Made by a program: the position numbers and the translations under genes | Part shown: piece by piece, positions 14,317 through 27,569 of the stretch | How positions within the stretch are numbered: position 1 is the stretch's first letter | Layout: every line of letters begins with the position of its first letter | Notes under the pieces: generated by a model | What the model saw: only the letters and a program-made list of their open reading frames with translations | Told to the model about the DNA's origin: nothing | The model's database searches: none | Virus record (IMG/VR): IMGVR_UViG_3300042558_004148 | Span: 309,486-373,485 of that record | DNA: 64,000 nucleotides | Direction: 5' to 3' (one strand)

Positions 14317-14369
14317 CATAAAATATTAAAATCAATTAGATATATAGTCTATTAAACATTAAAAACAAA

Positions 14370-14498: not shown

Positions 14499-14521
14499 GA
14501 TAATAATAAAACTTAAATATT

Positions 14522-14558: not shown

Positions 14559-14562
14559 ATTG

Positions 14563-14635
14563 GGTGAGGTAGCAAAGTTGGTCTATGCAGCGGACTGAAA
14601 ATCCGATGATGACGGTTCGATCCCGTCCCTCACCA
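14563..14635 (+). tRNA. tRNA-Phe(GAA)
   Basis: GCGGA-CTGAAAA-TCCGA. Confidence 0.9.
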
Positions 14636-14720
14636 CAGAATAAATTAAATATTAAAATGAAGCGAAAACAGTAAGGTCCTCTAGCTTAGATTAAGCTATG
14701 GCCATTAATTAAAAAATAAT

Positions 14721-14795
14721 GATCCCGTAGCTCAGTTGGTTTAGAGCACCTCACTTTTAATGAGGGAGTCGTGAGTTCGAATCTCACCGGGATCA
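14721..14795 (+). tRNA. tRNA-Lys(TTT)
   Basis: CCTCA-CTTTTAA-TGAGG. Confidence 0.95.
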
Positions 14796-14821
14796 CTCAT
14801 AAATGAATTTCATTTATATAA

Positions 14822-14894
14822 CGGGGTGTAGATCAGTTGGTAGATCGCCTGGTTTGGGACCAGGAGGCCGTCAGTTCGAGCCTGGCCACCCCGA
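14822..14894 (+). tRNA. tRNA-Pro(TGG) copy 1
   Basis: CCTGG-TTTGGGA-CCAGG. Confidence 0.92.
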
Positions 14895-14903
14895 CAGAAT
14901 AAA

Positions 14904-14979
14904 CGGGAAATAGAGGAGTTAGGTCGTCCTCGCCTGCCTTGGACGCAGGAGCTCGCAGGTTCGAATCCTGCTTTCCCGA
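14904..14979 (+). tRNA. tRNA-Pro(TGG) copy 2
   Basis: CCTGC-CTTGGAC-GCAGG. Confidence 0.9.
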
Positions 14980-14985
14980 CAAAAT

Positions 14986-15058
14986 GGGGCCGTAGTTTAA
15001 TTGGCTAAAATTTCTGACTTGCACTCAGAGGACCCGGGTTCGATCCCCGGTAGCTCCA
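14986..15058 (+). tRNA. tRNA-Ala(TGC)
   Basis: TCTGA-CTTGCAC-TCAGA; G3:U70 pair. Confidence 0.9.
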
Positions 15059-15068
15059 CTATTAAAAT

Positions 15069-15141
15069 ACGTCGGTAGCTCAATTGGTAGAGCACTGGTC
15101 TCCAAAACCAGGGGTTGTAGGTTCGATTCCTGCCCGGCGTG
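15069..15141 (+). tRNA. tRNA-Trp(CCA)
   Basis: CTGGT-CTCCAAA-ACCAG. Confidence 0.93.
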
Positions 15142-15151
15142 CAAATTAAAT

Positions 15152-15222
15152 TGTCCTTTGGTCTAATGGCAGGACACGTGGTTTTGGTCCACGCGGTGGA
15201 GGTTCGAATCCTCCAGGGACAA
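15152..15222 (+). tRNA. tRNA-Gln(TTG)
   Basis: CGTGG-TTTTGGT-CCACG. Confidence 0.93.
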
Positions 15223-15325
15223 CAAATTGTTCATTGACATATGGAATAGCAAGGTACGTAATACGTAAAGTGCATTTGCAAAAAGTTATTGGTTCGAATA
15301 GATATATAGATAAAAAATCTATTTT

Positions 15326-15985
15326 ATGCAAAGTTGTGAAAATTGTGGGAATGTACATAATGGTGAATTGGGTAGCGGGAGATTTTGCTCTCTAAAATGC
15401 TCTAGAGGATTTAGTACTAAATCTAAAAGATCGGAAATAAATTATAAGGTTTCGAAAACATTGACAGGAAAGGGAAACCCGCCAGAAATAAAAGAATGTG
15501 GCCACTGTAAAAATAAATTTGAAATTTCTTGGTCAAAACGTCTACAGACATGTTGTTCAAGAAAATGCGCCGCACAATTAAAATGGCTGGATGATGATTA
15601 TAGAAAAAATATAACGGAAGCTTCTTCAAAATCAGCTTATGAAAAACACAAAAATCCAGACATTAAGTTCGGGTGGAGAACAAGGTCAAAATTTGAGATG
15701 TCATATCCTGAAAGTATAGCAAAATCAATTCTTGATGAATATGGCATACAATATGAATATGAATATCCATTTCATCCATATTTTATAGATTTTGCAATCG
15801 TTGATCATAAAATTGCTATCGAGATAGACGGAAGACAGCATAATCAAAACGAGAGAATGTTAATAGATATTAAAAAAGATAAAAAATTGATGGAGAATGG
15901 ATGGAGAATATTTAGAATAAAGTTTCCAGAGGATAATATTAAAAATAGCATTAAAAATATATTGGCAGATATACCCTCCGCCTGA
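15326..15985 (+). CDS. free-standing endonuclease: Zn-finger modules plus DUF559/Vsr-like PD-(D/E)xK domain
   Basis: CENC...FCSLKC; CGHC...CCSRKC; YFIDFAIVDHKIAIEIDGRQH...DKKLMENGWRIFRI; GATATATA at 15301. Confidence 0.85.
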   Translation: MQSCENCGNVHNGELGSGRFCSLKCSRGFSTKSKRSEINYKVSKTLTGKGNPPEIKECGHCKNKFEISWSKRLQTCCSRKCAAQLKWLDDDYRKNITEASSKSAYEKHKNPDIKFGWRTRSKFEMSYPESIAKSILDEYGIQYEYEYPFHPYFIDFAIVDHKIAIEIDGRQHNQNERMLIDIKKDKKLMENGWRIFRIKFPEDNIKNSIKNILADIPSA

Positions 15986-16040
15986 TACGCGGTAGAAAGG
16001 TTAACTGGTTATATGTGGGTTCGAATCCCATTCTGCCAAC
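15962..16040 (+). ncRNA. tRNA-like RNA without a canonical D arm (GAT anticodon-like loop)
   Basis: TTGGCAGA/TCTGCCAA acceptor; GTGGG-TTCGAAT-CCCAT T arm; CCGC-CTGATAC-GCGG. Confidence 0.65.
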
Positions 16041-16072
16041 ATAAGATTTGTAAAAAATCGACAACTAAAAAT

Positions 16073-16146
16073 TCTCCTGTAGCTCAGTTGGTTAGAGCAT
16101 CTGACTGTTAATCAGAGGGTCACTGGTTCGAGTCCAGTCGGGAGAG
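16073..16146 (+). tRNA. tRNA-Asn(GTT) copy 1
   Basis: TCTGA-CTGTTAA-TCAGA; G73. Confidence 0.95.
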
Positions 16147-16152
16147 CAATAA

Positions 16153-16224
16153 GGATCTGTAGCTCAGTGGTAGAGCAGCGCACTGTTAATGCGCTGGTCG
16201 TAGGTTCGAATCCTACCGGGTCCT
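16153..16224 (+). tRNA. tRNA with GTT anticodon (Asn) copy 2, atypical U73
   Basis: GCGCA-CTGTTAA-TGCGC; discriminator T. Confidence 0.88.
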
Positions 16225-16248
16225 CAAAAATAATATATTAACAATAAA

Positions 16249-16512
<264 letters not shown>

Positions 16513-16552
16513 TGTAGGTGCCTCAAGGGACTGCAGCCCTACTACACTCTAT

Positions 16553-16624
16553 GCAGGTATCGTATAACGGCTATTACTCCAGACTTCCAATCTGGAGATT
16601 GGGGTTCGATTCCCCATACCTGCT
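16553..16624 (+). tRNA. tRNA-Gly(TCC)
   Basis: CCAGA-CTTCCAA-TCTGG. Confidence 0.95.
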
Positions 16625-16686
16625 CAGAATGTGGAACCACATCGATCCCGTAATGCCACGGCTTGTGCACAAGTAACGGGATGCAT

Positions 16687-16760
16687 GGCGAGATAGCTCA
16701 GATGGTTAGAGCGCGGGAGTCATAACCCCGAGGCCGTAGGTTCGATTCCTACTCTCGCTA
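16687..16760 (+). tRNA. tRNA-Met(CAT), elongator type
   Basis: GGCGAGA/TCTCGCT acceptor; CGGGA-GTCATAA-CCCCG. Confidence 0.85.
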
Positions 16761-16820
16761 CTAAAAAATAAATTAATATGAAAAAGAAATTCGACGCTCA
16801 TTAGGTTTAATAACCTAAAA

Positions 16821-17018
16821 ATGAGTAAAATGAGTAAAAACACAAACAGAGCAAAATTGAATAAGGCAACTTGTTCTAGAGACTACCGATTAATTTGGTT
16901 AAAATGGGAATTTCCTATGTATTGGGATGAAGGATTAAATTTTAAAAAAGGTCATCCCTCAATAAAATATAGAAGTTATAAAACATGGAAACATAGCAGA
17001 AAAACCAGATGGAAATAA
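16821..17018 (+). CDS. small basic hypothetical protein
   Basis: 65-aa ORF whose start lies inside a hairpin. Confidence 0.55.
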   Translation: MSKMSKNTNRAKLNKATCSRDYRLIWLKWEFPMYWDEGLNFKKGHPSIKYRSYKTWKHSRKTRWK

Positions 17019-17030
17019 TTATCTTATTAT

Positions 17031-17061
17031 TTTTTAATCCCGTAGTATTTTATTAATCTTG
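17031..17061 (+). promoter_or_regulatory. class-1 promoter
   Basis: TTTTTAATCCCG-11nt-TAATCTTG. Confidence 0.6.
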
Positions 17062-17075
17062 TAAAAAATAAAAAG

Positions 17076-17597
17076 ATGAAAACAAAATTCTATGAACTGT
17101 CACAAAACAACAGCGGAGGATCATTCGTAGTTGATGATAAACTTTGTCACCGACTTTTCATTGAGGCTGAATCTGAGGAAGAAGCAATCAATATAGCGGA
17201 AGATCTTGGGTGCTATTGGGATGGTGTAGATGAAGGTTCGGATTGTCCGTGTTGCGGAGATAGATGGTACAGATCCGGGAATTTAGTAGATCTAGAAAAT
17301 ATCAACTCCAAATGGGGAGGTTACGAGATCTCCGAATGGTTGACAGATCCCAAGGGTGCAAATGGCGATGATGCTATCAAGAAAATCAAAGCAGAATATG
17401 GTAAATCTGTATGGCTTACAGAACCTATTATAGAAAAAAAATACGGATCTGATAGAATCATAGGTAAAATCAGGCTCGATTCAATAGAGCAATATGCACA
17501 GATTATGGCCAATCTTTATGGATGGACTAAACCTGACTGTCGTATTTTCTATAAAGACGGTAGAATTAAAAACGTATACTCAAAGAAGCTGAAATAA
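17076..17597 (+). CDS. conserved phage hypothetical protein (SQNNSGG...CPCCGDRW)
   Basis: 173-aa ORF with a CxCC motif. Confidence 0.75.
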   Translation: MKTKFYELSQNNSGGSFVVDDKLCHRLFIEAESEEEAINIAEDLGCYWDGVDEGSDCPCCGDRWYRSGNLVDLENINSKWGGYEISEWLTDPKGANGDDAIKKIKAEYGKSVWLTEPIIEKKYGSDRIIGKIRLDSIEQYAQIMANLYGWTKPDCRIFYKDGRIKNVYSKKLK

Positions 17598-17613
17598 AAA
17601 TCAGCTTCTCTAC

Positions 17614-17688
17614 AGTCCCTTAGCTCAGTTGGTTTAGAGCGATTGTTTTACACACAATAGGTCGTCGGTTCGATTCCGGCAGGGACTA
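17614..17688 (+). tRNA. tRNA-Val(TAC)
   Basis: ATTGT-TTTACAC-ACAAT. Confidence 0.95.
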
Positions 17689-17691
17689 CAA

Positions 17692-17884
17692 AAGATCCAA
17701 TTAGTCCGAAAGGATAAAAAAGGAGGAATAAGATGAACAGACAAAAGTCATCTCCAAAGAGTAGAATTAAGCCGGTGTGAGCGCACGCGGAGGCATCCGA
17801 GGGAGGGTATGGAAACCTTCAGCTAGAAATTCAAGGGTATGGAATCAAGGTGTTAGTAGCGGTCTAAAGTCTGAATTGGATCTT
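17692..17884 (+). ncRNA. putative 193-nt structured RNA
   Basis: 11-bp terminal helix AAGATCCAATT/AATTGGATCTT; internal TCC-GAAA-GGA hairpin. Confidence 0.45.
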
Positions 17885-17890
17885 ATATAA

Positions 17891-17977
17891 GGGAATGCGC
17901 CAGAGTTGGAGAGTTGGGACGGACTGTAAATCCGTTGGCTTGCGCCTGAGTAGGTTCGAATCCTACCATTCCCACCA
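17891..17977 (+). tRNA. tRNA-Tyr(GTA) copy 1 (CCA encoded)
   Basis: ACGGA-CTGTAAA-TCCGT. Confidence 0.95.
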
Positions 17978-17989
17978 ATAAAAAAATAA

Positions 17990-18205
17990 ATGGTTATGGA
18001 ATTAAATGAAATTAAAAAATCACTGTATAAGGAAAATCCACATGCAGTTTTGAGGATGATTAGAAAGAGTGTTGCTTATTATTCTGCGCATTTAGTTTCG
18101 AATGACTCCATTGTGCAATTTCAAGTTCCTATTGAAGACATGGGTGATGCTGATTTCTTATCATCGATGGACTCGAAACTTTTAATCCGCTGGATAACTA
18201 TATAA
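17990..18205 (+). CDS. small hypothetical protein
   Basis: EIKKSLYKENP...VPIEDMGDADF...KLLIRWI. Confidence 0.7.
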   Translation: MVMELNEIKKSLYKENPHAVLRMIRKSVAYYSAHLVSNDSIVQFQVPIEDMGDADFLSSMDSKLLIRWITI

Positions 18206-18225
18206 TATCGAAACATCCCTTAATC

Positions 18226-18308
18226 GGGTCAGTTGAGCAACTGGTTGGCTCGCCGGACTGTAAATCCGGTCCCTTCGGGGCGTGTAGGTTCGAATCCTAC
18301 CTGGCCCA
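18226..18308 (+). tRNA. tRNA-Tyr(GTA) copy 2
   Basis: CCGGA-CTGTAAA-TCCGG. Confidence 0.93.
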
Positions 18309-18323
18309 CTAAATTTTTTAAAA

Positions 18324-18716
18324 ATGAACAAAGAAAGATTATCAAAATTAGCGGGTGATTTATTAGATATCCCATCAAGAATTTCTGAAATTCAAGGAAG
18401 AATCCTTGATCATAACGAGGAGATTCAAACAACGAACAATGAGATTTCTCAGATCGAGGCAACAATAAAAAGCGAGATTGGCGCTCAGTTGGACGATAAT
18501 GGGAAGAAACTTTACACTAATGCAGAATCAAGAGAAGCTGCTTTCGTCGAGATTTCAAATTCCAATCAGGAATTAGTTTCTAAAAGAAATAGATTAAGTT
18601 CTTTACAGGGATATGTTTCTATCGAAAGAATAAAAATGGAATCTCTAAGTAATGAACAAAGAAATATTAGAGCAGTTCTATATTTCTTCGGAGGTAGCTT
18701 CGAGGATGTAGTATAA
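18324..18716 (+). CDS. coiled-coil hypothetical protein
   Basis: 130 aa with a heptad pattern. Confidence 0.7.
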   Translation: MNKERLSKLAGDLLDIPSRISEIQGRILDHNEEIQTTNNEISQIEATIKSEIGAQLDDNGKKLYTNAESREAAFVEISNSNQELVSKRNRLSSLQGYVSIERIKMESLSNEQRNIRAVLYFFGGSFEDVV

Positions 18717-18721
18717 TAAAT

Positions 18722-18847
18722 GGGTAACCTTCCGGGGTGGGAACCGGAGCCAACGCGTAATTTTGGCGTCATCCATGACTAAGGTTAATAAGGAAACAGC
18801 AAGACTCGAGTAATTGCAAATCCAGGGTTCGATTCCCCTGTTACCCA
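18722..18847 (+). ncRNA. 126-nt tRNA-like RNA with a multibranched interior
   Basis: GGGTAA/TTACCC-A acceptor; CAGGG-TTCGATTC-CCCTG; TTCCGG-GGTGGGAA-CCGGAG hairpin. Confidence 0.6.
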
Positions 18848-18879
18848 CAAAAATAATGAAGATTAATAATTAAAAGATT

Positions 18880-19338
18880 ATGACAATTAGAGAACAGATA
18901 AATGCAGATTTCGTAACTGCAATGAAAGCAAAGGACGAAAATGCTAAAATGGCTTTAAATAGCATCAAGGCTTCTATTACTAATTCAGAAAAGGCAAGTC
19001 CAACATGGATTGCAACTGACGATGAGGTAATTAAAATTGTCAGCAAAGGAATCAAACAACGTGAGGAATCTATTAAAATGTATGATTTGGCAAATAGACC
19101 AGAATTGGTTACTAAAGAACAGGATGAAATTAGTATTCTGAAAAAATACATGCCTGCTCAGATGAGTGAACAAGAGATTGCGGATGCCTTGACAGTAATC
19201 ATGCAAGGTTTTGCTGGAGTAATTACAAATTCTCAAGCACTTGTTGGTAAAACTATTGGAGAATTCAATAAACAATACCAAGGTCGTGCAGATATCGGAA
19301 CAGTTAAAATGCTAGTTAATTCATTAGTTGAATGTTAA
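18880..19338 (+). CDS. GatB/YqeY domain protein
   Basis: IREQINADFVTAMKAKD...IKQREESIKMYDLANRPELVTKEQDEISILKKYMPAQMSE. Confidence 0.9.
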   Translation: MTIREQINADFVTAMKAKDENAKMALNSIKASITNSEKASPTWIATDDEVIKIVSKGIKQREESIKMYDLANRPELVTKEQDEISILKKYMPAQMSEQEIADALTVIMQGFAGVITNSQALVGKTIGEFNKQYQGRADIGTVKMLVNSLVEC

Positions 19339-19360
19339 TTAGTTAATTTTTGCTAAATAA

Positions 19361-19392
19361 TTTTTTTACCCCGTATCTATGTGATACATTTG
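19361..19392 (+). promoter_or_regulatory. class-1 promoter
   Basis: TTTTTTTACCCCG-11nt-TACATTTG. Confidence 0.75.
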
Positions 19393-19434
19393 CAGAAATA
19401 ATAAAAATATAGTTAATCTTTAAAGATAATAAAT

Positions 19435-20352
19435 ATGAGAAGAAATTCATTAGAATCAAAGGGTCTTTCAATGTCACAGGCTCAGTCAGTATCAAATCTT
19501 TGTAACCAAAGAGCTAGAGACATCAACTTTAAATTAGCTGATATAAATAATATCAGCAAATCGATCACTGTCGATGGAATGGAATATCATGAAGTTGAGG
19601 CTAAACCAATCCCGGTGAATGTTAATGAGCTTCTTGATCAAAAGTCTAAGCTGCATGCAACCCAATCATTTCTTATGGAGAATATCAAAGCCAAGGAGGA
19701 AATGCTAAACGATGTCAAATGGGATGAATTTGAATTCGATAGGGACCAGCCTGTTAAGGGAGAATTAAAATCAATCAAGAAGTTAAACGAGGTTGATGAA
19801 AAATGGGGATGGGAACAGTTATCGACTGCCGAATATAATGAATATTTGGAGGCTGAAGCATATGCTTCCCATGTTGGTCAATTCATCCACAAAGGTGGTA
19901 AATTAGATCAATTAAGAAGTGAGCTTCCGAATATTAAGAAATTGGAATGGATGGAAATCGAGGCTGGAAAAAAGACTCCGGTTAAGGTTGAGATTCATCA
20001 CACAAGTGATGATCTTTTAAAAATCCATGAAGATCTTGCTTCTACCCACAGAAAGCATGAACAAAGGGTTAACTACTTTAAAGCAAAAATAAAGAACCTT
20101 GTTACTTCGGAAAATGCAAGGATTGCTAAAGAAAATGCAGTTGCTCAGGCTGGAATAAAAGAACACAACGATAATGTTCTTGATGCTTATAATAAAGCAA
20201 TGGAAGAATACAGATCTAGCTATAGAGAAGCTTCGGATTTATTCGAAGAAAAAAGACAAAAAGAGATCGCTCGAATCTCAGCTCTAAGAATTGAGGTTGA
20301 TCCAAGATTTAAAGAAACAATTGATATGTTTCTATCTGAGGTTTCAGAATAA
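19435..20352 (+). CDS. coiled-coil-rich hypothetical protein (GLSMSQAQSVSNLCNQ)
   Basis: 305-aa ORF downstream of a promoter. Confidence 0.75.
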   Translation: MRRNSLESKGLSMSQAQSVSNLCNQRARDINFKLADINNISKSITVDGMEYHEVEAKPIPVNVNELLDQKSKLHATQSFLMENIKAKEEMLNDVKWDEFEFDRDQPVKGELKSIKKLNEVDEKWGWEQLSTAEYNEYLEAEAYASHVGQFIHKGGKLDQLRSELPNIKKLEWMEIEAGKKTPVKVEIHHTSDDLLKIHEDLASTHRKHEQRVNYFKAKIKNLVTSENARIAKENAVAQAGIKEHNDNVLDAYNKAMEEYRSSYREASDLFEEKRQKEIARISALRIEVDPRFKETIDMFLSEVSE

Positions 20353-20360
20353 TTAAAAGT

Positions 20361-20709
20361 GGGGTTGGTTATGGATAGTCAGGAGACGATTCCATAACCA
20401 TTTGATTGAAGGTGGTAATGTTTTATATAAAATCTTATCGATGATAGTTATAAACTAATTTAAGTGTTTCTACGGAAACAGATAAAACAGCAACCGCTTC
20501 CTTTACAAAAACAAAAAAAACTGAGATAGAACTCAATTGTTAAACAAGTTACTGAAATCTCATAGAGAAAGAGGAATCTTTACCACTAGACAGATAATTG
20601 GTTAGCAAAAAGAGACTTGGTTTTTGACTTTGCCTTTGTAGTAAAGGAAGGTCTTTGACGTTGGCATTGTCGTTAGCATAGTCTATACACTTTATCATTT
20701 TCATAACCC
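20361..20709 (+). ncRNA. putative ~350-nt structured RNA or 3' UTR element
   Basis: GGTTATGGA/TCCATAACC; CTTCCTTTAC (20497)/GTAAAGGAAG (20641); TGTTTC-TACG-GAAACA. Confidence 0.4.
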
Positions 20710-20715
20710 ATAATA

Positions 20716-20787
20716 TTACCAGTTGGCGTATTGGCATACGCACCCGATCGTAAGGGAGATATTAGGTTCGATTCCTATGCTGGTAGC
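20716..20787 (+). ncRNA. tRNA-like/pseudo-tRNA with an irregular anticodon arm
   Basis: TTACCAG/CTGGTAG; GCGTA-TTGGCA-TACGC; TAGG-TTCGATT-CCTA; CCC-GATCGTAA-GGG. Confidence 0.55.
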
Positions 20788-20792
20788 AAATA

Positions 20793-20972
20793 GAGTTTGT
20801 CGGTCCGTGATGATGATTAATTCTTTTATGGATGCAGTAGGAGTAAACGTGTTGTTGGCGTAAACCACATTGCTATAAACCACATTAGTAGACCTGTAGA
20901 TGGTGATAATTAATTATCCCGTAGGGTTATAATAATAAATCAATCCATAGTGAATACAGCGTCGGCAAGCTC
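20793..20972 (+). ncRNA. putative 180-nt structured RNA
   Basis: GAGTTTGTCG/CGGCAAGCTC closing helix; TATGGAT/ATCCATA inner helix. Confidence 0.45.
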
Positions 20973-20979
20973 CATTTAT

Positions 20980-21094
20980 GTTACTGTAGCTTAGCGGAAG
21001 AGCAGTCTCCCTGTAACCGTGCGTAGGGTTCGATTCCCTTTCAGATTGGATGCGAGACGTGGGATTGGCATAGGTTCGAATCCTATCAGTAACT
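20980..21094 (+). ncRNA. tRNA-like RNA with a 44-nt anticodon loop that contains a second T-arm motif
   Basis: Perfect acceptor GTTACTG/CAGTAAC, anticodon stem GTCTC/GAGAC and T arm ATAGG-TTCGAAT-CCTAT; inner AGGG-TTCGATT-CCCT. Confidence 0.7.
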
Positions 21095-21099
21095 CAAAA

Positions 21100-21298
21100 G
21101 TGTTGTTAGCTCAATTTGGTCAGAGCTTCCGATGGGTAGATATTAAGAAGATTCTAGACACTATCTTAAAAAGGGCCACAGGGACACGGAGTGCTAGGTG
21201 ATATGCGTAATGAAATTAATTACTTCATGTAACAGGTCATAGGGTCCGTAAACGGTACATAAGGCCGTTGGGTATAGGTTCGAATCCTGTACAACACA
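21100..21298 (+). ncRNA. 199-nt tRNA-like RNA with large internal expansions
   Basis: GTGTTGT/ACAACAC-A; D arm GCTC-AATTTGGTCA-GAGC; ATAGG-TTCGAAT-CCTGT. Confidence 0.7.
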
Positions 21299-21415
21299 CG
21301 ATGTGGCGTTGACCTGTCTGCTGCCACAATGGATAAGAGGAATAGCTTTTAGGAAGTAGATCCAATTTGATGCGCAAAAAAGTGGAGGGTGACGAACGGG
21401 GAGAGACTCGTCCAT

Positions 21416-21487
21416 AGTTCCATAGTTTAACGGATAGAATTTCCCACTACGGATGGGAAGATGAGGGTTCGAATCCTTCTGGGACTA
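21416..21487 (+). tRNA. tRNA-Arg(ACG)
   Basis: TCCCA-CTACGGA-TGGGA. Confidence 0.9.
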
Positions 21488-21525
21488 CTAATTATCGAAT
21501 AATATTTAGAAAATAATAGAAAATA

Positions 21526-21557
21526 TTTTTTTTATCCGAAACTTTTCCCTATTTTTG
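21526..21557 (+). promoter_or_regulatory. class-1 promoter for tRNA array B
   Basis: TTTTTTTTATCCG-11nt-TATTTTTG; GATATATA at 21580-21587. Confidence 0.75.
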
Positions 21558-21606
21558 CATAGAAATTAAAAGGGAGAAAGATATATAAATCTCAAAATAA
21601 CATAAA

Positions 21607-21708
21607 ATGAAACAAGTACAATACACATTATCGTCACTGCATTTAGATACAACAAGTACATCTTGTGAGTTATCACTGTGCGTTGAAAAGGAGAAGGTAT
21701 TGGTATAA
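21607..21708 (+). CDS. 33-aa putative leader peptide (MKQVQYTLSSLHLDTTSTSCELSLCVEKEKVLV)
   Basis: Same position as the 14370 leader: promoter, ORF, terminator, tRNAs. Confidence 0.6.
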   Translation: MKQVQYTLSSLHLDTTSTSCELSLCVEKEKVLV

Positions 21709-21728
21709 GTATATAAAAACTTAAATCT

Positions 21729-21760
21729 AAAAGGTCTCCTCTAAAAAGGAGACCTTTTTT
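21729..21760 (+). terminator. terminator/attenuator hairpin before the tRNA-Ser array
   Basis: AAAAGGTCTCCT-CTAAAA-AGGAGACCTTTT plus TT. Confidence 0.85.
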
Positions 21761-21797
21761 ATTTTACGAGATCTTTGACATATTGGAAGCCAAAAAA

Positions 21798-21881
21798 GGA
21801 GGAGTAATTAAGCTGGCGCTTGACCTAGTCTTGAAAACTAGCGGTACCCTCGGGTATGGGGATCGATACCTCACTCCTCCG
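21798..21881 (+). tRNA. tRNA-Ser(TGA) copy 1
   Basis: CTAGT-CTTGAAA-ACTAG; long variable arm; T loop ATCGATA. Confidence 0.85.
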
Positions 21882-21890
21882 CAAATGAAT

Positions 21891-21977
21891 GGAAAGTTGT
21901 CCGAGTGGCTTAAGGAGCACGCTTGGAAAGCGTGTGCATCCGAAAGGGTGCCATAGGTTCGAATCCTATACTTTCCG
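21891..21977 (+). tRNA. tRNA-Ser(GGA)
   Basis: CACGC-TTGGAAA-GCGTG. Confidence 0.95.
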
Positions 21978-21982
21978 CACAT

Positions 21983-22055
21983 TCCTCCGTGGCTCAATTG
22001 GTAGAGCAGCTGATTTGTAATCAGCAGGTTGCAGGTTCGATCCCTGTCGGAGGAT
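21983..22055 (+). tRNA. tRNA-Thr(TGT)
   Basis: GCTGA-TTTGTAA-TCAGC. Confidence 0.93.
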
Positions 22056-22070
22056 CTAATAAATAAAAAT

Positions 22071-22142
22071 GGCACTGTGGTCGATTGGCTCAGGCGTCCG
22101 CCTGCAAAGCGGAAGAGATAGGTTCGATTCCTATTGGTGCCT
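22071..22142 (+). tRNA. tRNA-Cys(GCA)
   Basis: TCCGC-CTGCAAA-GCGGA; U73. Confidence 0.92.
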
Positions 22143-22160
22143 CTAATTAATAACTTGCTT

Positions 22161-22583
22161 ATGAATGATATAGAAAAAATAGCTTTAGCAAAAGCTAAGA
22201 TCGAGGAGGAAAGAGCTAACAGGAAAGAAGCTATGATTAAATACTGGAATAATTTAAAGAAATTTGAAAATCCATGCGACGTTCCAGGTATTCCTAGAGT
22301 TGAAGAAAAGGAGTATAAAGAATTCTATGTACCCAGACTTATAGCTGCTGGAGCAATACCGAAAGCAGATCTTGTAGATGGACAATTTTACTTCGGTGAA
22401 TATAGAAATGCTAATGTTGGTAAATGGATAGCTGAAAAAAACTTATTTGAACACTGGAGATATAAATTCGGATTTCGTTTAGATACTTGTAATCACTTCG
22501 AGGATGATAATGGATTTGCATTATTCGTTCCTATTAGATTAGCAAATGATGCTGAAATAGAGGAATACCTCAGCACAAAATAA
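22161..22583 (+). CDS. hypothetical protein (probable start MNDIEK)
   Basis: The track start at 22134 lies inside tRNA-Cys; ATG at 22161 is outside it. Confidence 0.7.
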   Translation: MNDIEKIALAKAKIEEERANRKEAMIKYWNNLKKFENPCDVPGIPRVEEKEYKEFYVPRLIAAGAIPKADLVDGQFYFGEYRNANVGKWIAEKNLFEHWRYKFGFRLDTCNHFEDDNGFALFVPIRLANDAEIEEYLSTK

Positions 22584-22588
22584 TACAT

Positions 22589-22663
22589 GGTGGCCGTAGT
22601 TCAGTTGGTTAGAACGTCTGGTTGTGGTCCAGAAGGTCGTCGGTTCGATCCCGACCGGTCACC
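22589..22663 (+). tRNA. tRNA-His(GTG)
   Basis: G-1; TCTGG-TTGTGGT-CCAGA; C73. Confidence 0.95.
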
Positions 22664-22794
22664 CTTTTTTATTACTAAGATTATGGCTTTTATTAAGATC
22701 CATCAAAGGTTTTGAATTAGTTTAGATTCTCAGGGCTAATATAGTCGACGATTCGAAATCAACTTTAGAATATATAATTATAAAAATAAAATTT

Positions 22795-23478
22795 ATGTGG
22801 AATGAAACCGAGTCTATTCTTGCTAAAAAATTACTAGAGGATGGAAAAAAATATAGAGAAATATCAGAAGTAATAGGTAAAAGTTACAATTCAATTAAAA
22901 ACCATCTTTTGAAAAAATATGGAATAAATCAATCTCAATTCGACAACTTAAGAAATATCGATATTCTAATTTGCCTTTGTTGTGGAGATGAGTTCGATAA
23001 TGAGAAATCTGGCAAGACAAGAAAATATTGCTCAGTGACGTGTTCAAATATAAGTAGAGGGAAAAAAAATCTAAAAAATTGTCCGATCTGTTTTAATACA
23101 GTAGATAAAGAAAAAAGAACCAAATACTGTTCACCAGAATGTCATAGTAAATCTATAACAAAAATAAATCAGGAAAAATTAGACGGCGGGATTTTTACTG
23201 ATTCAAACAGAAAAACTATTAAGAAGTTTTTAATATTAAAAAGAGGACACTGCTGTGAAATTTGTAAAAATGAAAGTTGGAATGGCGTAAATATACCATT
23301 AATATTGGATCACATTGACGGAAATCCCCAAAATAACCTAGAAAATAATTTTAGGTTGATTTGTCCAAATTGTGACGCACTAACACCAACTTATATGGGG
23401 AGAAATATAAAAAATATAAAAAGAAAACCCCGACAAAGAGATTTAGATAGGGATATAAAAATACAGAAGAATTCGTGA
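22795..23478 (+). CDS. free-standing HNH endonuclease with an N-terminal HTH and Zn-finger modules
   Basis: CEIC...LILDHIDGNPQNNLENNFRLICPNCDA; YCSVTC and YCSPEC; GAATATATA at 22768. Confidence 0.9.
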   Translation: MWNETESILAKKLLEDGKKYREISEVIGKSYNSIKNHLLKKYGINQSQFDNLRNIDILICLCCGDEFDNEKSGKTRKYCSVTCSNISRGKKNLKNCPICFNTVDKEKRTKYCSPECHSKSITKINQEKLDGGIFTDSNRKTIKKFLILKRGHCCEICKNESWNGVNIPLILDHIDGNPQNNLENNFRLICPNCDALTPTYMGRNIKNIKRKPRQRDLDRDIKIQKNS

Positions 23479-23495
23479 TTATGATCGGATCAATT

Positions 23496-23576
23496 GCTTG
23501 AGTGGTGGAATTAGGTAGACACGCTAGATTTAGGATCTAGTGCTTCGGCGTGAGGGTTCGATTCCCTCCTTGAGTA
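23496..23576 (+). tRNA. tRNA-Leu(TAG) copy 2
   Basis: CTAGA-TTTAGGA-TCTAG. Confidence 0.92.
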
Positions 23577-23581
23577 CAAAT

Positions 23582-23667
23582 GCCCCGGTGGTGAAACTGG
23601 TAGACACGCTGGACTTAAAATTCAGTGGGCCGTAAGGTCCGTGCGGGTTCGACTCCCGCCCGGGGTA
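23582..23667 (+). tRNA. tRNA-Leu(TAA)
   Basis: CTGGA-CTTAAAA-TTCAG. Confidence 0.93.
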
Positions 23668-23672
23668 CAATT

Positions 23673-23758
23673 GGAGAGTGATCCGTGATGGCGATCGGGT
23701 CCGCCTGCTAAGCGTGACGTACGGGAAACCGTATGAGGTTCGATTCCTCCGCTCTCCG
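23673..23758 (+). tRNA. tRNA-Ser(GCT)
   Basis: CGC-CTGCTAA-GCG; long variable arm; GGAGAG/CTCTCC-G. Confidence 0.82.
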
Positions 23759-23784
23759 CTTTTAATTAAAAAAATTAGATATTA

Positions 23785-23816
23785 TTTTTATTACCCGTGA
23801 AACATTATTATATTTG
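23785..23816 (+). promoter_or_regulatory. class-1 promoter for tRNA array C
   Basis: TTTTTATTACCCG-11nt-TATATTTG. Confidence 0.75.
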
Positions 23817-23863
23817 CAGAGTAATAAAAATAACATATAATAAACAGTTCATTGAAAATATAT

Positions 23864-23936
23864 CGTGGGGTAGAGCAGTAGGTAGCTCATTGGGCTCATA
23901 ACCCAAAGGTCGTCGGTTCGAGTCCGGCCCCCGCTA
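23864..23936 (+). tRNA. initiator tRNA-fMet(CAT) copy 1
   Basis: Unpaired 1:72; GGG/CCC in the anticodon stem. Confidence 0.92.
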
Positions 23937-23941
23937 CTAAA

Positions 23942-24089
23942 GGTTGCGAAAGCTATAGGTCAGTATGTAATGCTGATTGGCCAATGGATTAATGATGATT
24001 TAGTATTACTGCCCGAGATACCGGTTAAGCAGCATGGTAAGTGACTAAGTAAGTAATTGATATAGTAGGTTCGATTCCTACCGTGACCA
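23942..24089 (+). ncRNA. 148-nt tRNA-like RNA (acceptor and T arm only)
   Basis: GGTTGCG/CGTGACC-A; GTAGG-TTCGATT-CCTAC. Confidence 0.65.
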
Positions 24090-24094
24090 CATAT

Positions 24095-24167
24095 TGCGGA
24101 GTAGAGCAGTTGGTAGCTCAGTGGGCTCATAACCCAAAGGTCGCAGGTTCGAGTCCTGCCTCCGCTA
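24095..24167 (+). tRNA. initiator tRNA-fMet(CAT) copy 2
   Basis: TGCGGAG/CTCCGCT; GGG-CTCATAA-CCC. Confidence 0.9.
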
Positions 24168-24356
24168 CGAGTCGCTTTTAGTTATCCCTGTAGAAGATAG
24201 AGGTTTGGGTAGTGAAGTAAACCAGTGGAATTCTACAACTTTAAAAGTTTGTGTGACAAAGTAAGGTCTAATTTTCCTGACAAGGGGGCTTCCCGACGAA
24301 AAATAGAAGCTCAACTAATTAAGTAGAATCTGAATCGCTCAATTCAGATTCGAAAC

Positions 24357-24457
24357 GGTCCGGTGGTGAAGTTGGTAAACACTAAGGTGGATGTATTCGA
24401 AGGCCAAGAATAACTAACATCTACTAGGCGTCGCAGGTTCGAATCCTGCCCGGTCCA
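24357..24457 (+). ncRNA. 101-nt tRNA-like RNA with an elongated anticodon arm
   Basis: GGTCCGG/CCGGTCC-A; GTG-AAGTTGGTAAA-CAC; GTGGATGT/ACATCTAC; GCAGG-TTCGAAT-CCTGC. Confidence 0.7.
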
Positions 24458-24507
24458 CAAATCTCAAGATTAATTACCTTGAGGCTGTCAGGTTCGAAAC
24501 TGACGAT

Positions 24508-24611
24508 TGGCTATAGTGTATTGGAGCACAGCAGAACGGAGTACAAGAATAGTGCTTAGCACTCACGGAAAGGGGACGCAGGTTTAAGGTTCGAATCCTT
24601 ATTAGTCACCA
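24508..24611 (+). ncRNA. 104-nt tRNA-like RNA with an expanded anticodon region, ending ACCA
   Basis: TGGCTA/TAGTCA; GTG-TATTGGAG-CAC; TAAGG-TTCGAAT-CCTTA. Confidence 0.65.
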
Positions 24612-24735
24612 AATTTAAAAGTACACCGGAACGCTCTGATTTGTCGAAAGACTTTTCAACGACGGTACGAGGCAGTCTCTGTTTATTCGCGGTACAGAGA
24701 AAGAGAGGTTCATCCCGCTGCGTCCTCGTTATAAT

Positions 24736-24807
24736 GGTCCTGTAGTTAAACGGCTATAATGCTGCCCTGTCACGGCAGAGTTCGGAGTTCGATTCTCCGT
24801 GGGACCG
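24736..24807 (+). tRNA. tRNA-Asp(GTC)
   Basis: CTGCC-CTGTCAC-GGCAG. Confidence 0.95.
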
Positions 24808-24809
24808 CA

Positions 24810-24951
24810 AAAAGATAATGGTTCTTTCTACGTAGGTTGTCGACAAACCGAAATAGGTAAAAAAAGTTCACCACCCCTTGTGCCTGGATCCAGTAAAACT
24901 CAGGAAAGCACTTAAGATTGGAGCGAGAAGGGTACTCCATCATTATCTTTT
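24810..24951 (+). ncRNA. putative 142-nt structured RNA
   Basis: AAAAGATAATG/CATTATCTTTT closing helix; GTGC-CTG...CAG-GAAA-GCAC. Confidence 0.45.
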
Positions 24952-24956
24952 TAACC

Positions 24957-25043
24957 GGAGGAGTCGCATAGTGGTTTAGTGCACCGGTCTTGAAAACCGG
25001 CGATCCTGAAAGGGGTCCGTGAGTTCGAATCTCACCTCCTCCG
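24957..25043 (+). tRNA. tRNA-Ser(TGA) copy 2
   Basis: CCGGT-CTTGAAA-ACCGG. Confidence 0.95.
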
Positions 25044-25047
25044 CAAA

Positions 25048-25342
25048 GGGTAAGAGATACCCTCCATGTTTAGATCTCATTAAAGGATCTCGGTTAATGT
25101 CCAGGTGGTAACCGAAAGCTGGTTTGGAAAGCAATCATCTCATGGGTGGTAATGAGTCAAATTAGTTAAAATACTGGAACTGAGAACAAAGGCAGGTAGC
25201 AGAGCCTCTCAGTAGCTTGACAGGTTTTTATGTGGTAAGACACTAATGAAAAGCTTCGCATGGCTCGTACCCATGGGAGTGATGGTTCTCGAAACAGCTA
25301 GAGTAACCCGTTAAAATCTAGCTTAGCACATCTCACTAAGTG
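25048..25342 (+). ncRNA. putative ~295-nt structured RNA
   Basis: Several hairpins (CTCAT/ATGAG, CTGAGA/TCTCAG, AGCTAGA/TCTAGCT, CTTAG/CTAAG); no long ORF; richer in GC than the coding background. Confidence 0.45.
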
Positions 25343-25347
25343 AACAT

Positions 25348-25419
25348 GGCCCGTTCGACTATCGGTTAGGTCGTCAGGTTTTCATCCTGGAAAGAGGGGT
25401 TCGATTCCCCTACGGGCTA
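25348..25419 (+). tRNA. tRNA-Glu(TTC)
   Basis: TCAGG-TTTTCAT-CCTGG. Confidence 0.95.
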
Positions 25420-25489
25420 CTATGTGTTAGATACTGTAATATTTAACACAGAGCCAATGAAAGTGATTTACAGATTGCTTGAATTGGTT

Positions 25490-25558
25490 GAAGCTTTCGT
25501 CTAGCGTTCTAGGACTCCGCGTGTAGCGGGAACATCGGTTAGAATCCGATATGCTTTA
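25490..25558 (+). pseudogene. tRNA pseudogene or tRNA-like element with a shortened anticodon loop
   Basis: GTC-TAGCGTTCTAG-GAC; CCGC-GTGTA-GCGG; ATCGG-TTAGAAT-CCGAT. Confidence 0.5.
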
Positions 25559-25567
25559 CTAAACATT

Positions 25568-25603
25568 TAAAAGTCGGTACATTTAAAAGTATCGACTTTT
25601 TTT
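25568..25603 (+). terminator. terminator closing the tRNA region
   Basis: AAAAGTCGGTAC-ATTTAAAA-GTATCGACTTTT plus T run. Confidence 0.8.
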
Positions 25604-25667
25604 GTGGCCTAAAAAAGAGCAATTTCAGATAAATATTCCGAACCAAAATAAACCAAAATAAACATCT

Positions 25668-27569
25668 ATGAAAAAATTACTCATTCTCATTTTTGGAATC
25701 CTGCTGATACCATATCTAGGATTCTCACAATGTCCAACAGCTCCGGGAAATGGAGTCTATGTTATGGTCAATTCACAATATCAGGTAGGTACTGTAGCAT
25801 CAGGAAAAACCAATATAGGTCTATGTTATCAAAACACGACATCTACCTTGATCACCGGTTTGCAATACAGAGTTTGGTATGATAAGAATGCATTCGGCGG
25901 TGGAGCTCCTATAGTAACATCAACAAATACATCATTTGCACAGGTACTTCAATACGAGAATAATCTATCGGAAGGTAGCATTACAGTAACTATCGTTTAC
26001 ACTGGTAGTAGTAGCACTTTTACTATTCCATCAGGTGCATTATTTAATATAGAATTACAACATTCAGCAAACTTTCAAACCTTCACTAATAATATAACTA
26101 ATATTGAGGTAACTGGAACAACAACATTCAATAATCTAAGCTCAAATATAGATGGTCTTGATGATCTATTAACCCTTCATAATTACGGTGGGGTTATTAA
26201 TTCTGTAATGTTTAATTACCAGGGTAACTTTGTTAACGTTACCGGATCGCCAGCTAAGAATCTAACTCTTGCTCTAGAGAAGAAACCTAAAACCGGATCG
26301 ACTTGGTCTATAGATGAGATTGACACTACTGATCTTAATGGTGAATTCAATTTTTCAAAATCGATAGACACCACATACTATGACGTTAGACTTGCAGTTC
26401 AGGGTGATACATTATCAGTAGGTAATATAGTTACTGTGGCCGATGCGCAAAGAGTTAATCAATATGTTCTTGGACAACTTCAACCATCCGGATTTGATTA
26501 TTATTCTTCCGATGTAAATAATTCAGGTAACATTACAATGTCGGACGTTTACGGAATATATGGTAGAATAGCGGGAAGATTTAGTGCTTGGCCAAATAAC
26601 GTACCTGACATCAGATTCTTTAGTGCTTCCGAATATGCATCGATCAATGGATCTTCAACAAATCAGACACAATCAATACCAGGGGTAACTAATCTAACGT
26701 TCGATATATTACCAGGCCAACCAGATTCGGTCACATTTTATGTACTTGGATATGGAGATGCCAATGGTACAGGATATAACATGGCTCGTTTAGTTCCGAT
26801 AACTATTATAAATCCGAACAACACACCAAATTATATAATGGACGTGACAACGCAATATGATGACACTACATTGTCTACGATTGAAATTAACATGCCTAAG
26901 GTGACTGTAGATGAAGCAAATCTTGTAACGATACCTGTTACATTAAAATCTAATTCAGGTCCAATAGGATCGCTACAAATGGCATTATACTACGATCCAT
27001 CTTTATTAGAATTTAAGGAAATAGTTAATAGTGAAAAATCAATGGATTGGATGAGTTTCGTTAATCCAGTTGAAAATACGATCGAATGGGGAGGATTTGA
27101 TATCTCAGGAAATCAACATCCAATAAATGATGGTGAAAACCTATTTAATCTTAAGTTTCTTGCACTTGAACCACAGTCAGATTGGAATGCTAGTCCATTA
27201 TGGGTAACAAGGAAATATGCGGGTAATTCTATTGCAACTGATCTGATCATAAATCCAACCCACGGTGAAGTTAAAATAATGAATATCTCATCAGGCTACT
27301 TAAATCTACTCGGTAACAAGATAATAGTATATCCAAATCCAGTAGACGATAAAATAATGGTTGCTTTTGAGGTTTCAGAGAAAGAAAATATAACACTATC
27401 GATTTACGATATAAACGGAAAACTTGTAGTTGATTTAATGAAAACTAATATGCCAAAGGGAAAATATCAGTACACTTATGATATTGGTGAACTATCAGCT
27501 GGTTTATATGTTGCAACATTAAATATCAAAGCAAGCCAAATAGCGACAGCTAAAATAATTAAAAAGTAA
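25668..27569 (+). CDS. secreted cohesin-like / Ig-like / dockerin-like / cohesin protein with a T9SS type-A C-terminal sorting domain
   Basis: Signal peptide; ITGLQYRVWYDKNAF; SDVNNSGNITMSDV; VTIPVTL...GSLQMALYYDPSLLEF; VYPNP...LSIYDINGKLV...AGLYVATL...KIIKK. Confidence 0.85.
   Translation: MKKLLILIFGILLIPYLGFSQCPTAPGNGVYVMVNSQYQVGTVASGKTNIGLCYQNTTSTLITGLQYRVWYDKNAFGGGAPIVTSTNTSFAQVLQYENNLSEGSITVTIVYTGSSSTFTIPSGALFNIELQHSANFQTFTNNITNIEVTGTTTFNNLSSNIDGLDDLLTLHNYGGVINSVMFNYQGNFVNVTGSPAKNLTLALEKKPKTGSTWSIDEIDTTDLNGEFNFSKSIDTTYYDVRLAVQGDTLSVGNIVTVADAQRVNQYVLGQLQPSGFDYYSSDVNNSGNITMSDVYGIYGRIAGRFSAWPNNVPDIRFFSASEYASINGSSTNQTQSIPGVTNLTFDILPGQPDSVTFYVLGYGDANGTGYNMARLVPITIINPNNTPNYIMDVTTQYDDTTLSTIEINMPKVTVDEANLVTIPVTLKSNSGPIGSLQMALYYDPSLLEFKEIVNSEKSMDWMSFVNPVENTIEWGGFDISGNQHPINDGENLFNLKFLALEPQSDWNASPLWVTRKYAGNSIATDLIINPTHGEVKIMNISSGYLNLLGNKIIVYPNPVDDKIMVAFEVSEKENITLSIYDINGKLVVDLMKTNMPKGKYQYTYDIGELSAGLYVATLNIKASQIATAKIIKK

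Follow-up and report, generated by a model that had tools for sequence, protein, structure and literature searches.

A putative leader-peptide gate upstream of tRNA genes in Bacteroidota phages

A short leader open reading frame (ORF), followed by a terminator and a competing antiterminator, precedes a tRNA gene array in a phage genome fragment and is rich in the amino acids whose tRNAs follow, so that the phage probably turns these tRNA genes on when those tRNAs run short. The same design recurs in dozens of Bacteroidota phages, and we found no prior description of it. The fragment analyzed (the window) is a 64,000-nucleotide stretch of IMG/VR record IMGVR_UViG_3300042558_004148 (positions 309,486 to 373,485), and the leaders and array B described here lie on its plus strand. 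A sequence-only reading had proposed a leader-peptide attenuator whose ORF tail competes with the terminator and whose codons match the downstream tRNAs. The features it described are all present and its interpretation is supported, although it was wrong in describing the two leaders of the window as unrelated in sequence and in the promoter type.

The leader of array B (leader B) is a 33-codon ORF running from an ATG at 21607 to a TAA at 21706 to 21708 and encoding MKQVQYTLSSLHLDTTSTSCELSLCVEKEKVLV, of whose 33 residues six are Ser, four Thr, six Leu, and two Cys. The candidate control codons (Thr, Leu, Ser, His, Cys) lie at 21625 to 21681. An intrinsic terminator (21729 to 21765) begins 20 nt downstream of the stop codon and comprises a 5′ arm (21729 to 21740), a 6-nt loop (21741 to 21746), and a 3′ arm (21747 to 21758), with 12 pairs (5 G-C), followed by a T-rich tract, TTTTTTATTTT. 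The hairpin alone folds at −16.9 kcal/mol, and the full leader fold has a z score of −4.4. Within the ORF tail, in the codons E-K-E-K, AAAAGGAGA occurs at 21686 to 21694, ending 11 nt before the stop codon, and occurs again at 21744 to 21752, spanning the loop and 3′ arm. Its core AGGAGA (21689 to 21694) can pair with TCTCCT in the 5′ arm, and in a local fold lacking the 3′ arm this pairing is in the minimum-energy structure. However, a 9-nt repeat appears by chance in 1.8% of shuffles of the upstream 166 nt, so the window by itself is only suggestive, and the proof comes from related loci. The antiterminator of leader B is also weak, with 6 base pairs and a duplex energy of −8.7 kcal/mol, ranking 3 of 24, and in a fold that includes the whole 5′ UTR, the 5′ arm prefers GGGAGA at 21572 to 21577.

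The promoter of leader B (21520 to 21561) comprises an A/T-rich upstream run and the motif CGAAACTTT-N4-TATTTTTG-CATA (21537 to 21561), in which the Bacteroidota-type −7 box TATTTTTG lies at 21550 to 21557, about 45 nt before the ORF. A consensus scan found no sigma-70 promoter at 21500 to 21600, and overall sigma-70 counts equaled chance. The bare −7 box TAnnTTTG is also at chance frequency in the window, but the extended 25-nt motif occurs 3 times against 0.07 expected. Across 39 leader clusters, 18 have TAnnTTTG 27 to 101 nt upstream of the ATG, against 2.7 expected, whereas a looser promoter pattern scan returned mostly chance matches. The transcription start is inferred at about 21563 to 21566. 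Upstream of array A lies a paralogous leader (leader A; 14283 to 14562), with a promoter motif at 14296 to 14320, a 42-codon ORF at 14370 to 14498, an antiterminator strand at 14469 to 14481 that is in the minimum-energy fold, and a hairpin at 14522 to 14556 with a T-run. tRNA-Phe starts at 14563, 4 nt after the T-run, so no promoter fits between them, and there is no boxA. The two leaders share an 87-nt block (14260 to 14346 and 21501 to 21587) that is 70% identical, as well as AAAACTTAAAT ahead of the hairpin; only the ORFs and the hairpin arms differ. A 5′-UTR motif of unknown role, GATATATAAAT (21580 to 21590 in leader B), is conserved in leaders A and B and in three homologous leaders, L005, L009, and L010.

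The first gene of array B is an atypical class II tRNA-Ser(UGA) at 21798 to 21882, which ARAGORN misses by default but finds at a lowered threshold, which Rfam finds at 46 bits, and which is 88% identical to a 642-kb uncultured phage. tRNA-Ser(GGA), tRNA-Thr(UGU), and tRNA-Cys(GCA) follow at 21891 to 22143, and the array continues to about 25420 with His, Leu, Leu, Ser, Met, Met, Asp, Ser, and Glu. No close relatives were found among GenBank phages, with only tRNA-sized matches returned. Between terminator and tRNA lies a boxA-like element, (A)TCTTTGACATATTGGAA (21771 to 21788), present as a single copy in the window and equal to a motif found in the 16S-23S spacer of Bacteroidota rRNA operons: in bacterial genomes, 92 of 123 instances lie in rRNA operons upstream of 23S. 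In phage contigs, about 45% of distinct instances lie 3 to 10 nt before a tRNA. The element matches the consensus GYTCTTTAANA (PMC5725501) at 9 of 10 specified positions here and in L010, with A at position 2 of the window copy where the consensus requires a pyrimidine, and is closer in L009. It is a candidate NusB/NusE loading site that would make read-through transcription processive. The TTGACA after the terminator was rejected as a −35 box for the array, as the −10 would fall inside the tRNA, the element is the host rrn spacer boxA, and several phages have a canonical −7 promoter upstream of it. A composite promoter formed from T-run and boxA was likewise rejected because the spacing between them varies from 4 to more than 35 nt.

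Comparison with other phages decides the case. Divergent homologues of leader B (L009, MKNLFHTTTSSSTSTSSCDEDTRALLRDR; L010, MKNLFHIDLSLLTSLSTCDETNCAMLRDK; and L190), all preceding tRNA-Ser/Thr/Cys arrays, and of leader A (L005, L013, and L015) have different hairpin arms, and in each an ORF-tail segment copies the new 3′ arm. In IMG/VR phage contigs, 67 of 76 hairpin and T-run sites within 140 nt upstream of phage tRNAs have an ATG ORF of 15 to 70 codons ending 10 to 45 nt before the hairpin, compared to 11.1 ± 3.0 in shuffles and 6 in the reverse complement. Over the 39 leader clusters, the ORF tail pairs with its own 5′ arm at −13.25 kcal/mol, compared to −7.94 kcal/mol with the arms of other loci (P < 1e-5); the own arm is the best partner in 20 of 39 clusters, and the ORF head gives −4.5. 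With an ORF-independent window, the values are −13.04 and −7.89 for tRNA-linked hairpins, whereas 120 ordinary terminators sampled from 316 in the same contigs show no such preference (−6.31 compared to −6.03; P = 0.07).

Leader peptides are also enriched in the amino acids of the downstream tRNAs. Residues cognate to those tRNAs make up a fraction of 0.283, compared to 0.182 ± 0.013 under permuted pairing (z = 7.6), and all 19 amino acids are enriched 1.1- to 2.8-fold. The clusters are not fully independent; with 18 stricter clusters z is 5.3 (minimum, 4.7); very permissive peptide clustering chained all leaders into one group and was uninformative. At the codon level, 64 codons match the anticodons of the array, against 52.2 expected (z = 2.7). 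Cognate codons are depleted in the last 6 codons (0.10 to 0.17) and enriched 7 to 24 codons before the stop (0.27 to 0.37), the position from which a stalled ribosome would leave the antiterminator strand free. Within the window, leader A has 32 residues from the set of amino acids whose tRNAs are found only in array A and 4 from the array B-only set, while leader B has 10 and 22, respectively (Fisher P = 1.1e-6; random partitions, P = 1.4e-4). Adding tRNA-Ile(GAU) at 15946 to 16040 to set A accounts for the 4 Ile residues of leader A.

We therefore propose, with reasonable confidence, that region 21520 to 21797 is a ribosome-mediated, three-segment transcription attenuator that gates array B. 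In this model, a host-type (Bacteroidota) promoter starts a transcript of about 200 nt. A ribosome that translates the leader smoothly reaches the stop codon and covers the antiterminator strand (segment 2), the terminator hairpin forms, and transcription stops before the tRNA genes. If the ribosome is held up at the Ser, Thr, Cys, Leu, or His codons in the middle of the leader, or does not translate at all, segment 2 stays free and pairs with the 5′ arm, the terminator cannot form, and RNA polymerase reads on through the boxA element, which probably recruits Nus factors and carries the polymerase through the structured, untranslated array. Translation of the ORF, the direction of the switch, and the Nus function of boxA are inferred. 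There are no transcript or ribosome data: the only public runs holding the sequence behave as DNA, and one further run covers only conserved tRNA parts from other organisms. No conserved anti-antiterminator (segment 1) was found, as segment 2 pairs with its own upstream ORF at −7.49 kcal/mol compared to −7.15 for others (P = 0.16); this feature belongs to the trp type and is not required for attenuation as such, but without translation the default would be read-through, unlike in trp. Furthermore, extra tRNA does not cure amino acid starvation, and the logic only pays if tRNA, rather than amino acid, is limiting. In this model, the array is made on demand, for example when host tRNAs are scarce, mismatched to phage codon usage, or destroyed.

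Other explanations are possible but appear unlikely. The cassette could be an independent small gene or small RNA whose hairpin also ends the upstream tRNA unit A, with the downstream tRNAs made by constitutive leak-through or from distant promoters. The canonical, strong terminator, the absence of expression data, and conservation of the leader A peptide between the window and L005 with synonymous changes would fit this view, but it does not explain why the ORF tail covaries with the 5′ arm only at tRNA-linked hairpins, why peptide composition follows the downstream tRNA set, why boxA sits downstream of the terminator with no room for a promoter in several phages, or why tRNA-Phe starts so close to the T-run in leader A. 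A switch driven by the nascent peptide, as with TnaC, in which a small molecule or the state of the tunnel arrests the ribosome and codon identity is secondary, is similarly doubtful. The peptide itself could matter, as peptide-level conservation is seen in leader A (QVGIAKWYNG, retaining AKW), and 19 of 39 leader clusters contain Trp, in 12 of them 12 to 19 codons before the stop in a K/R/H/I-W-F/Y context (L179, another leader, carries PWFNID), while only 6 of the 19 arrays hold tRNA-Trp. However, leader B and its homologues have no Trp, leader sequences are otherwise very diverse, and a fixed arrest motif would not produce an association that holds for all 19 amino acids.

Reversed logic dependent on ribosome-polymerase coupling, as in pyrBI, would have efficient translation give read-through and stalling give termination. 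Stop-to-hairpin distances of 19 to 37 nt (median, 24) lie in the range where a terminating ribosome can still partly repress a terminator in E. coli, in which termination efficiency is reduced below about 30 nt (PMC4824070). Against this, the covarying segment 2 would have no role and would be free to block the terminator exactly when the ribosome stalls, and the avoidance of the last 6 codons by cognate codons fits a requirement that segment 2 stay uncovered during a stall; we consider this reading improbable. Least likely is an RNA-only switch, T-box-like or protein mediated, with an incidental ORF. Although terminator/antiterminator alternatives also define such systems, no T-box matched at E ≤ 1 in 8000 to 27000, the best cis-regulatory Rfam hits being far below threshold (PyrR, 30.8 against 54; Phe_leader, 28.4 against 55, E = 0.4), the ORF is present 6 times more often than chance, and its composition tracks the tRNAs.

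Why phages carry tRNA genes, and when they use them, is still debated, with codon usage compensation, replacement of degraded host tRNAs, and escape from anticodon nucleases among the proposed reasons. We speculate, and consider it somewhat more likely than not, that phages of Bacteroidota carry a general, modular tRNA-demand sensor, in which each tRNA subarray is preceded by a leader peptide whose codons sample the tRNA species encoded behind it. The tRNA genes would then be expressed only when the infected cell's pool of those tRNAs cannot keep ribosomes moving, whether through codon usage mismatch in a new host, host shutoff, or tRNA-cleaving defense nucleases, and read-through would be locked in by a boxA taken from the host rRNA operon. 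This would be the first attenuator class whose output is tRNA itself, and would show that at least one large group of phages regulates its tRNA arrays by demand. The combination of short ORF, tail/arm complementarity, terminator, boxA, and tRNA also provides annotators with a simple signature for a class of small ORFs that gene callers ignore, and leader composition could even help predict the identity of atypical downstream tRNAs.

The closest known systems are the ribosome-mediated leader-peptide attenuators of amino acid biosynthesis operons, trpL, hisL, leuL, pheL, and the multivalent thrL and ilvL (PMC1183508). As in these, a promoter-proximal short ORF carries control codons and is followed by an intrinsic terminator and a mutually exclusive antiterminator helix using a segment that a ribosome at the stop codon would cover, and the thr and ilv leaders also read several amino acids at once. 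Here, however, the regulated genes are tRNAs rather than enzymes, and the element is phage-borne in a Bacteroidota setting, with no Shine-Dalgarno sequence and a −7/−33 type promoter. Control codons are a scattered mixture mirroring a whole tRNA array rather than a tandem run, although some relatives do have runs (TTTSSSTSTSSC in L009, YYYGKKSYKK in a further leader, L372), a boxA follows the terminator, and no Rfam leader family matches. The pheM leader of the pheST operon appears likewise to control a component of the translation machinery according to charged tRNA supply, but its target is a synthetase for one amino acid (phenylalanyl-tRNA synthetase) in a bacterial chromosome, and there is no sequence relation. 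T-box riboswitches also report on the state of specific tRNAs through a terminator/antiterminator choice and feed back on the translation apparatus, but they bind uncharged tRNA directly, have no leader ORF, and are mostly in Firmicutes. In pyrBI, a leader ORF also ends close to an intrinsic terminator and the outcome depends on where the ribosome is, but there is no antiterminator helix and close coupling prevents termination (PMC4824070), whereas here a covarying antiterminator strand is the conserved feature. Finally, the 11-nt core GTTCTTTGACA resembles the boxA of rrn antitermination and, as with the nut sites of phage lambda, a phage uses a host boxA (PMC5725501, PMC3177189), but in this case it sits 3 to 10 nt before tRNA genes and downstream of a putatively regulated terminator, and no N-like protein or boxB was identified.

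The window is a phage-like sequence with 34% G+C that carries more than 32 tRNA genes between 9.2 and 25.5 kb. A cohesin-domain protein (25668-27569) carries a type IX secretion (T9SS) sorting signal, which points to a Bacteroidota host, and identical stretches occur in IMG/VR contigs of 343-373 kb, so the window comes from a huge phage. No close relative was found among GenBank phages. Elsewhere in the window, a protein at 33822-35381 has an Mtd_N domain plus collagen repeats (a possible tropism or diversity-generating target), and a repeat with a 9-nt period lies inside a Laminin_G_3 protein (11007-11200). Several tRNA-like sequences (15946-16040, 20717-20787, 20980-21095, 24023-24090, 24357-24457 and 25490-25558) were missed or oddly called by ARAGORN at default settings; these include a low-scoring Ile(GAU), one with a 2-nt "anticodon", Rfam tRNA hits of 101-115 nt that may carry introns or insertions, and further T-arm-like repeats. 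The first small array (Arg, Leu, Met; 9150-9540) has a similar-looking promoter region but no leader ORF or terminator in front of it. A strong terminator lies directly behind it (9510-9536), and a tiny ATG ORF at 9205 runs into tRNA-Arg.

Every element listed in the sequence-only reading of the leader before the second array (leader B, array B) is present. A 33-codon ORF runs from 21607 to 21708 and is followed by a textbook intrinsic terminator at 21729-21758, with 12 pairs, a 6-nt loop and a T-tract. The sequence AAAAGGAGA appears at 21686-21694 and again at 21744-21752. A tRNA-Ser(UGA) lies at 21798-21882, which default ARAGORN misses but which both Rfam and a lowered ARAGORN threshold recover, and Ser(GGA), Thr and Cys follow. 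This first tRNA has an atypical D and T region and scores just under the tRNA-Sec model threshold. It is conserved in L010 and L190 (two divergent homologues of the leader B locus) and in a 642-kb uncultured phage (88% identity), although a canonical Ser(UGA) also exists at 24957-25044. Two protein ORFs (22134-22583 and 22795-23478) are embedded in array B, of which the second is Cys/His-rich and HNH-like by eye, but without a Pfam hit at E<=0.001.

Three points of that reading required correction. The promoter is not sigma-70-like, but a Bacteroidota -7 box inside a 25-nt motif found three times in the window against a chance expectation of 0.07: before leader A (the leader of the preceding array), before leader B, and, with 3 mismatches, at 35460-35484, 30 nt upstream of a ClpB-like AAA+ gene (35516-37582). 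The motif therefore looks like a general promoter class of this phage. In addition, leaders A and B, which had been described as unrelated in sequence, are paralogous in their promoter and 5'-UTR (87 nt at 70% identity) and in a short motif before the hairpin; only the ORFs and the hairpin arms are unrelated. A further motif, GATATATA(A/G), is conserved in the 5'-UTR of all A- and B-type leaders (21580-21590 and 14339-14347 in the window), about 25 nt after the -7 box. Finally, the 9-nt repeat alone would arise in about 2% of shuffles.

Scanning IMG/VR with the promoter motif returned identical copies of both leaders and divergent homologues of each. The B-type homologues L009 and L010 encode MKNLFHTTTSSSTSTSSCDEDTRALLRDR and MKNLFHIDLSLLTSLSTCDETNCAMLRDK, and their hairpin arms differ from those of the window. 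Each has, 4-5 nt before its stop codon, a 7-8 nt copy of its own 3' arm, and each precedes Ser/Ser/Thr/Cys tRNAs. The A-type homologues (L005, L013 and L015) keep the peptide core QVGIAKWYNG with synonymous changes, and have a different hairpin and a 9-10 nt ORF-tail segment matching it. In local folds lacking the 3' arm, the helix between ORF tail and 5' arm is in the minimum-energy structure for both leaders of the window and for L005, L009 and L010.

The 17-nt element between the terminator and tRNA-Ser is common in phage contigs, where in about 45% of distinct contexts it lies 3-10 nt ahead of a tRNA of any identity, often preceded by a hairpin with a T-run. We collected all retrieved viral loci and examined every strong hairpin plus T-run within 140 nt upstream of a tRNA, which gave 76 distinct sites. 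Of these, 67 have an ATG ORF of 15-70 codons ending 10-45 nt before the hairpin, compared to 11.1 +/- 3.0 in shuffled upstream sequence and 6 in the reverse complement. The median leader is 30 codons long, with a median stop-to-hairpin distance of 24 nt, and 18 of 39 peptide clusters have a perfect TAnnTTTG box 27-101 nt upstream of the ATG, against 2.7 expected.

To test the antiterminator, the best duplex between the last 42 nt of the ORF (plus 8 nt) and the terminator 5' arm was computed for 39 cluster representatives. Pairing with the locus's own arm averaged -13.25 kcal/mol, against -7.94 for arms of other loci (permutation P < 1e-5), and the own arm was the best of 39 in 20 cases; the first 50 nt of the ORF gave only -4.5. 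A window defined only by distance from the hairpin gave -13.04 versus -7.89 at tRNA-linked hairpins, whereas 120 ordinary terminators sampled from 316 in the same contigs gave -6.31 versus -6.03 (P = 0.07). The complementarity is therefore specific and is maintained by covariation across unrelated sequences.

The composition of the leaders is likewise linked to the downstream tRNAs. The fraction of leader residues whose amino acid has a tRNA in the downstream array is 0.283, compared to 0.182 +/- 0.013 when leaders and arrays are re-paired at random (z = 7.6), and all 19 amino acids are enriched, by 1.1-2.8 fold. Using the first tRNA alone gave z = 5.3, and stricter clustering (18 clusters, random representatives) gave z = 5.3, with a minimum of 4.7. 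Cognate residues are rare in the last six codons (0.10-0.17) and common 7-24 codons before the stop (0.27-0.37), a position at which a stalled ribosome would not cover the antiterminator strand. Codons decodable by the array's own anticodons number 64, against 52.2 expected from local codon usage (z = 2.7). Among the phage loci, for example, the leader or its key stretch reads YYYGKKSYKK before Lys, Tyr and Lys tRNAs (L372), VHIIHIWEHLLEEV before His, Glu, Val and Trp (L070), PQPQQHPQ before Pro, His, Pro and His (L350), WAADEDRLCSVG before Asp, Asp, Glu and Glu (L160), and TTYTTATTAPQQGAGQG before Thr, Gly, Ala, Gln and Pro (L354). Inside the window, the two leaders divide the amino acids as their arrays do: leader A has 32 residues from amino acids whose tRNAs lie only between 14.5 and 21.5 kb and 4 from the B-only set, whereas leader B has 10 and 22, respectively (Fisher P = 1.1e-6; random partitions of the amino acids, P = 1.4e-4). 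Leader A has no Ser, Leu, Cys or His at all, and its four Ile residues are matched by the low-scoring tRNA-Ile(GAU) at 15946-16040.

The element at 21771-21788 (GTTCTTTGACATNTTGGAA) corresponds to the boxA of the host rRNA-operon spacer. In GTDB genomes, the 19-nt pattern occurs almost only in Bacteroidota, and 92 of 123 instances lie in rRNA operons, in the 16S-23S spacer about 150 nt upstream of 23S. In Pedobacter hartonius, for example, 16S is at 510-2031, two tRNAs follow, the motif is at 2545 and 23S starts at 2714. None of the genomic instances lies directly before a tRNA. The core of the element resembles the gamma-proteobacterial boxA consensus GYTCTTTAANA (PMC5725501). The phages have therefore placed the host rrn boxA between the attenuator and the tRNA array, where we infer that its likely role is to load Nus factors on polymerases that pass the terminator, so that they traverse the long, structured, untranslated array. 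Because boxA works as RNA, its position downstream of the hairpin implies that productive transcription comes through the terminator, and in several phages there is no room for a promoter in between. Leader A has no boxA, and its tRNA-Phe starts 4 nt after the T-run. In locus L179, a 45-codon ORF with the motif PWFNID (about 212-347 of a 537-nt extract) ends before a hairpin, T-run and boxA, but no tRNA follows.

The best-supported model is a three-segment, ribosome-mediated attenuator, in which segment 2, in the last codons of the leader, pairs with the terminator 5' arm unless a ribosome sitting at the stop codon covers it. In this model, smooth translation gives termination, whereas stalling at the cognate codons, or no translation at all, gives read-through. 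No conserved segment 1 was found, so the default without ribosomes would be read-through, unlike trp. In the window's own copy, the antiterminator helix has only 6 base pairs (-8.7 kcal/mol), and a similar GGGAGA in the 5'-UTR competes for the 5' arm in the longer fold. The model is without expression evidence, as the public runs that contain the sequence look like DNA. They do, however, show a related strain, in freshwater metagenome contigs, with a 2,973-nt insertion between 21494 and 21521, exactly between tRNA-Arg and the leader B promoter, marking the upstream boundary of the module; the listed differences within the leader fall in the 5'-UTR, the spacer, the hairpin loop and behind boxA.

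In E. coli, a ribosome at a stop codon less than about 30 nt from a terminator can itself reduce termination (PMC4824070), which could modulate the response. Half of the leader clusters contain a Trp, mostly 12-19 codons before the stop in a K/R/H/I-W-F/Y context and whether or not a tRNA-Trp follows, as in the leader peptides of loci L105, L106, L150, L166, L206, L391 and L392 and in leader A (AKWY; 14445-14456). This could reflect common ancestry or a nascent-chain pausing motif. Taken together, the finding is real, and the proposal of the sequence-only reading, that the leader is an attenuator whose ORF tail competes with the terminator and whose residues match the tRNAs behind it, is supported and generalized. 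We consider it likely, although not certain, that this is a translation-sensing attenuator gating the tRNA array.

In the open-access papers and preprints searched, nothing was found on leader-peptide attenuators in front of tRNA genes, in phages or in Bacteroidota, and Rfam has no matching family. Leader-peptide attenuation is itself of a known kind: multivalent leaders such as thr and ilv are the nearest precedent, and pheM-pheST probably provides a precedent for control of the translation apparatus. What appears to be new here is the output, which is the tRNA genes themselves, along with a leader that mirrors a whole array, the coupling to a borrowed rrn boxA, and the phage setting.
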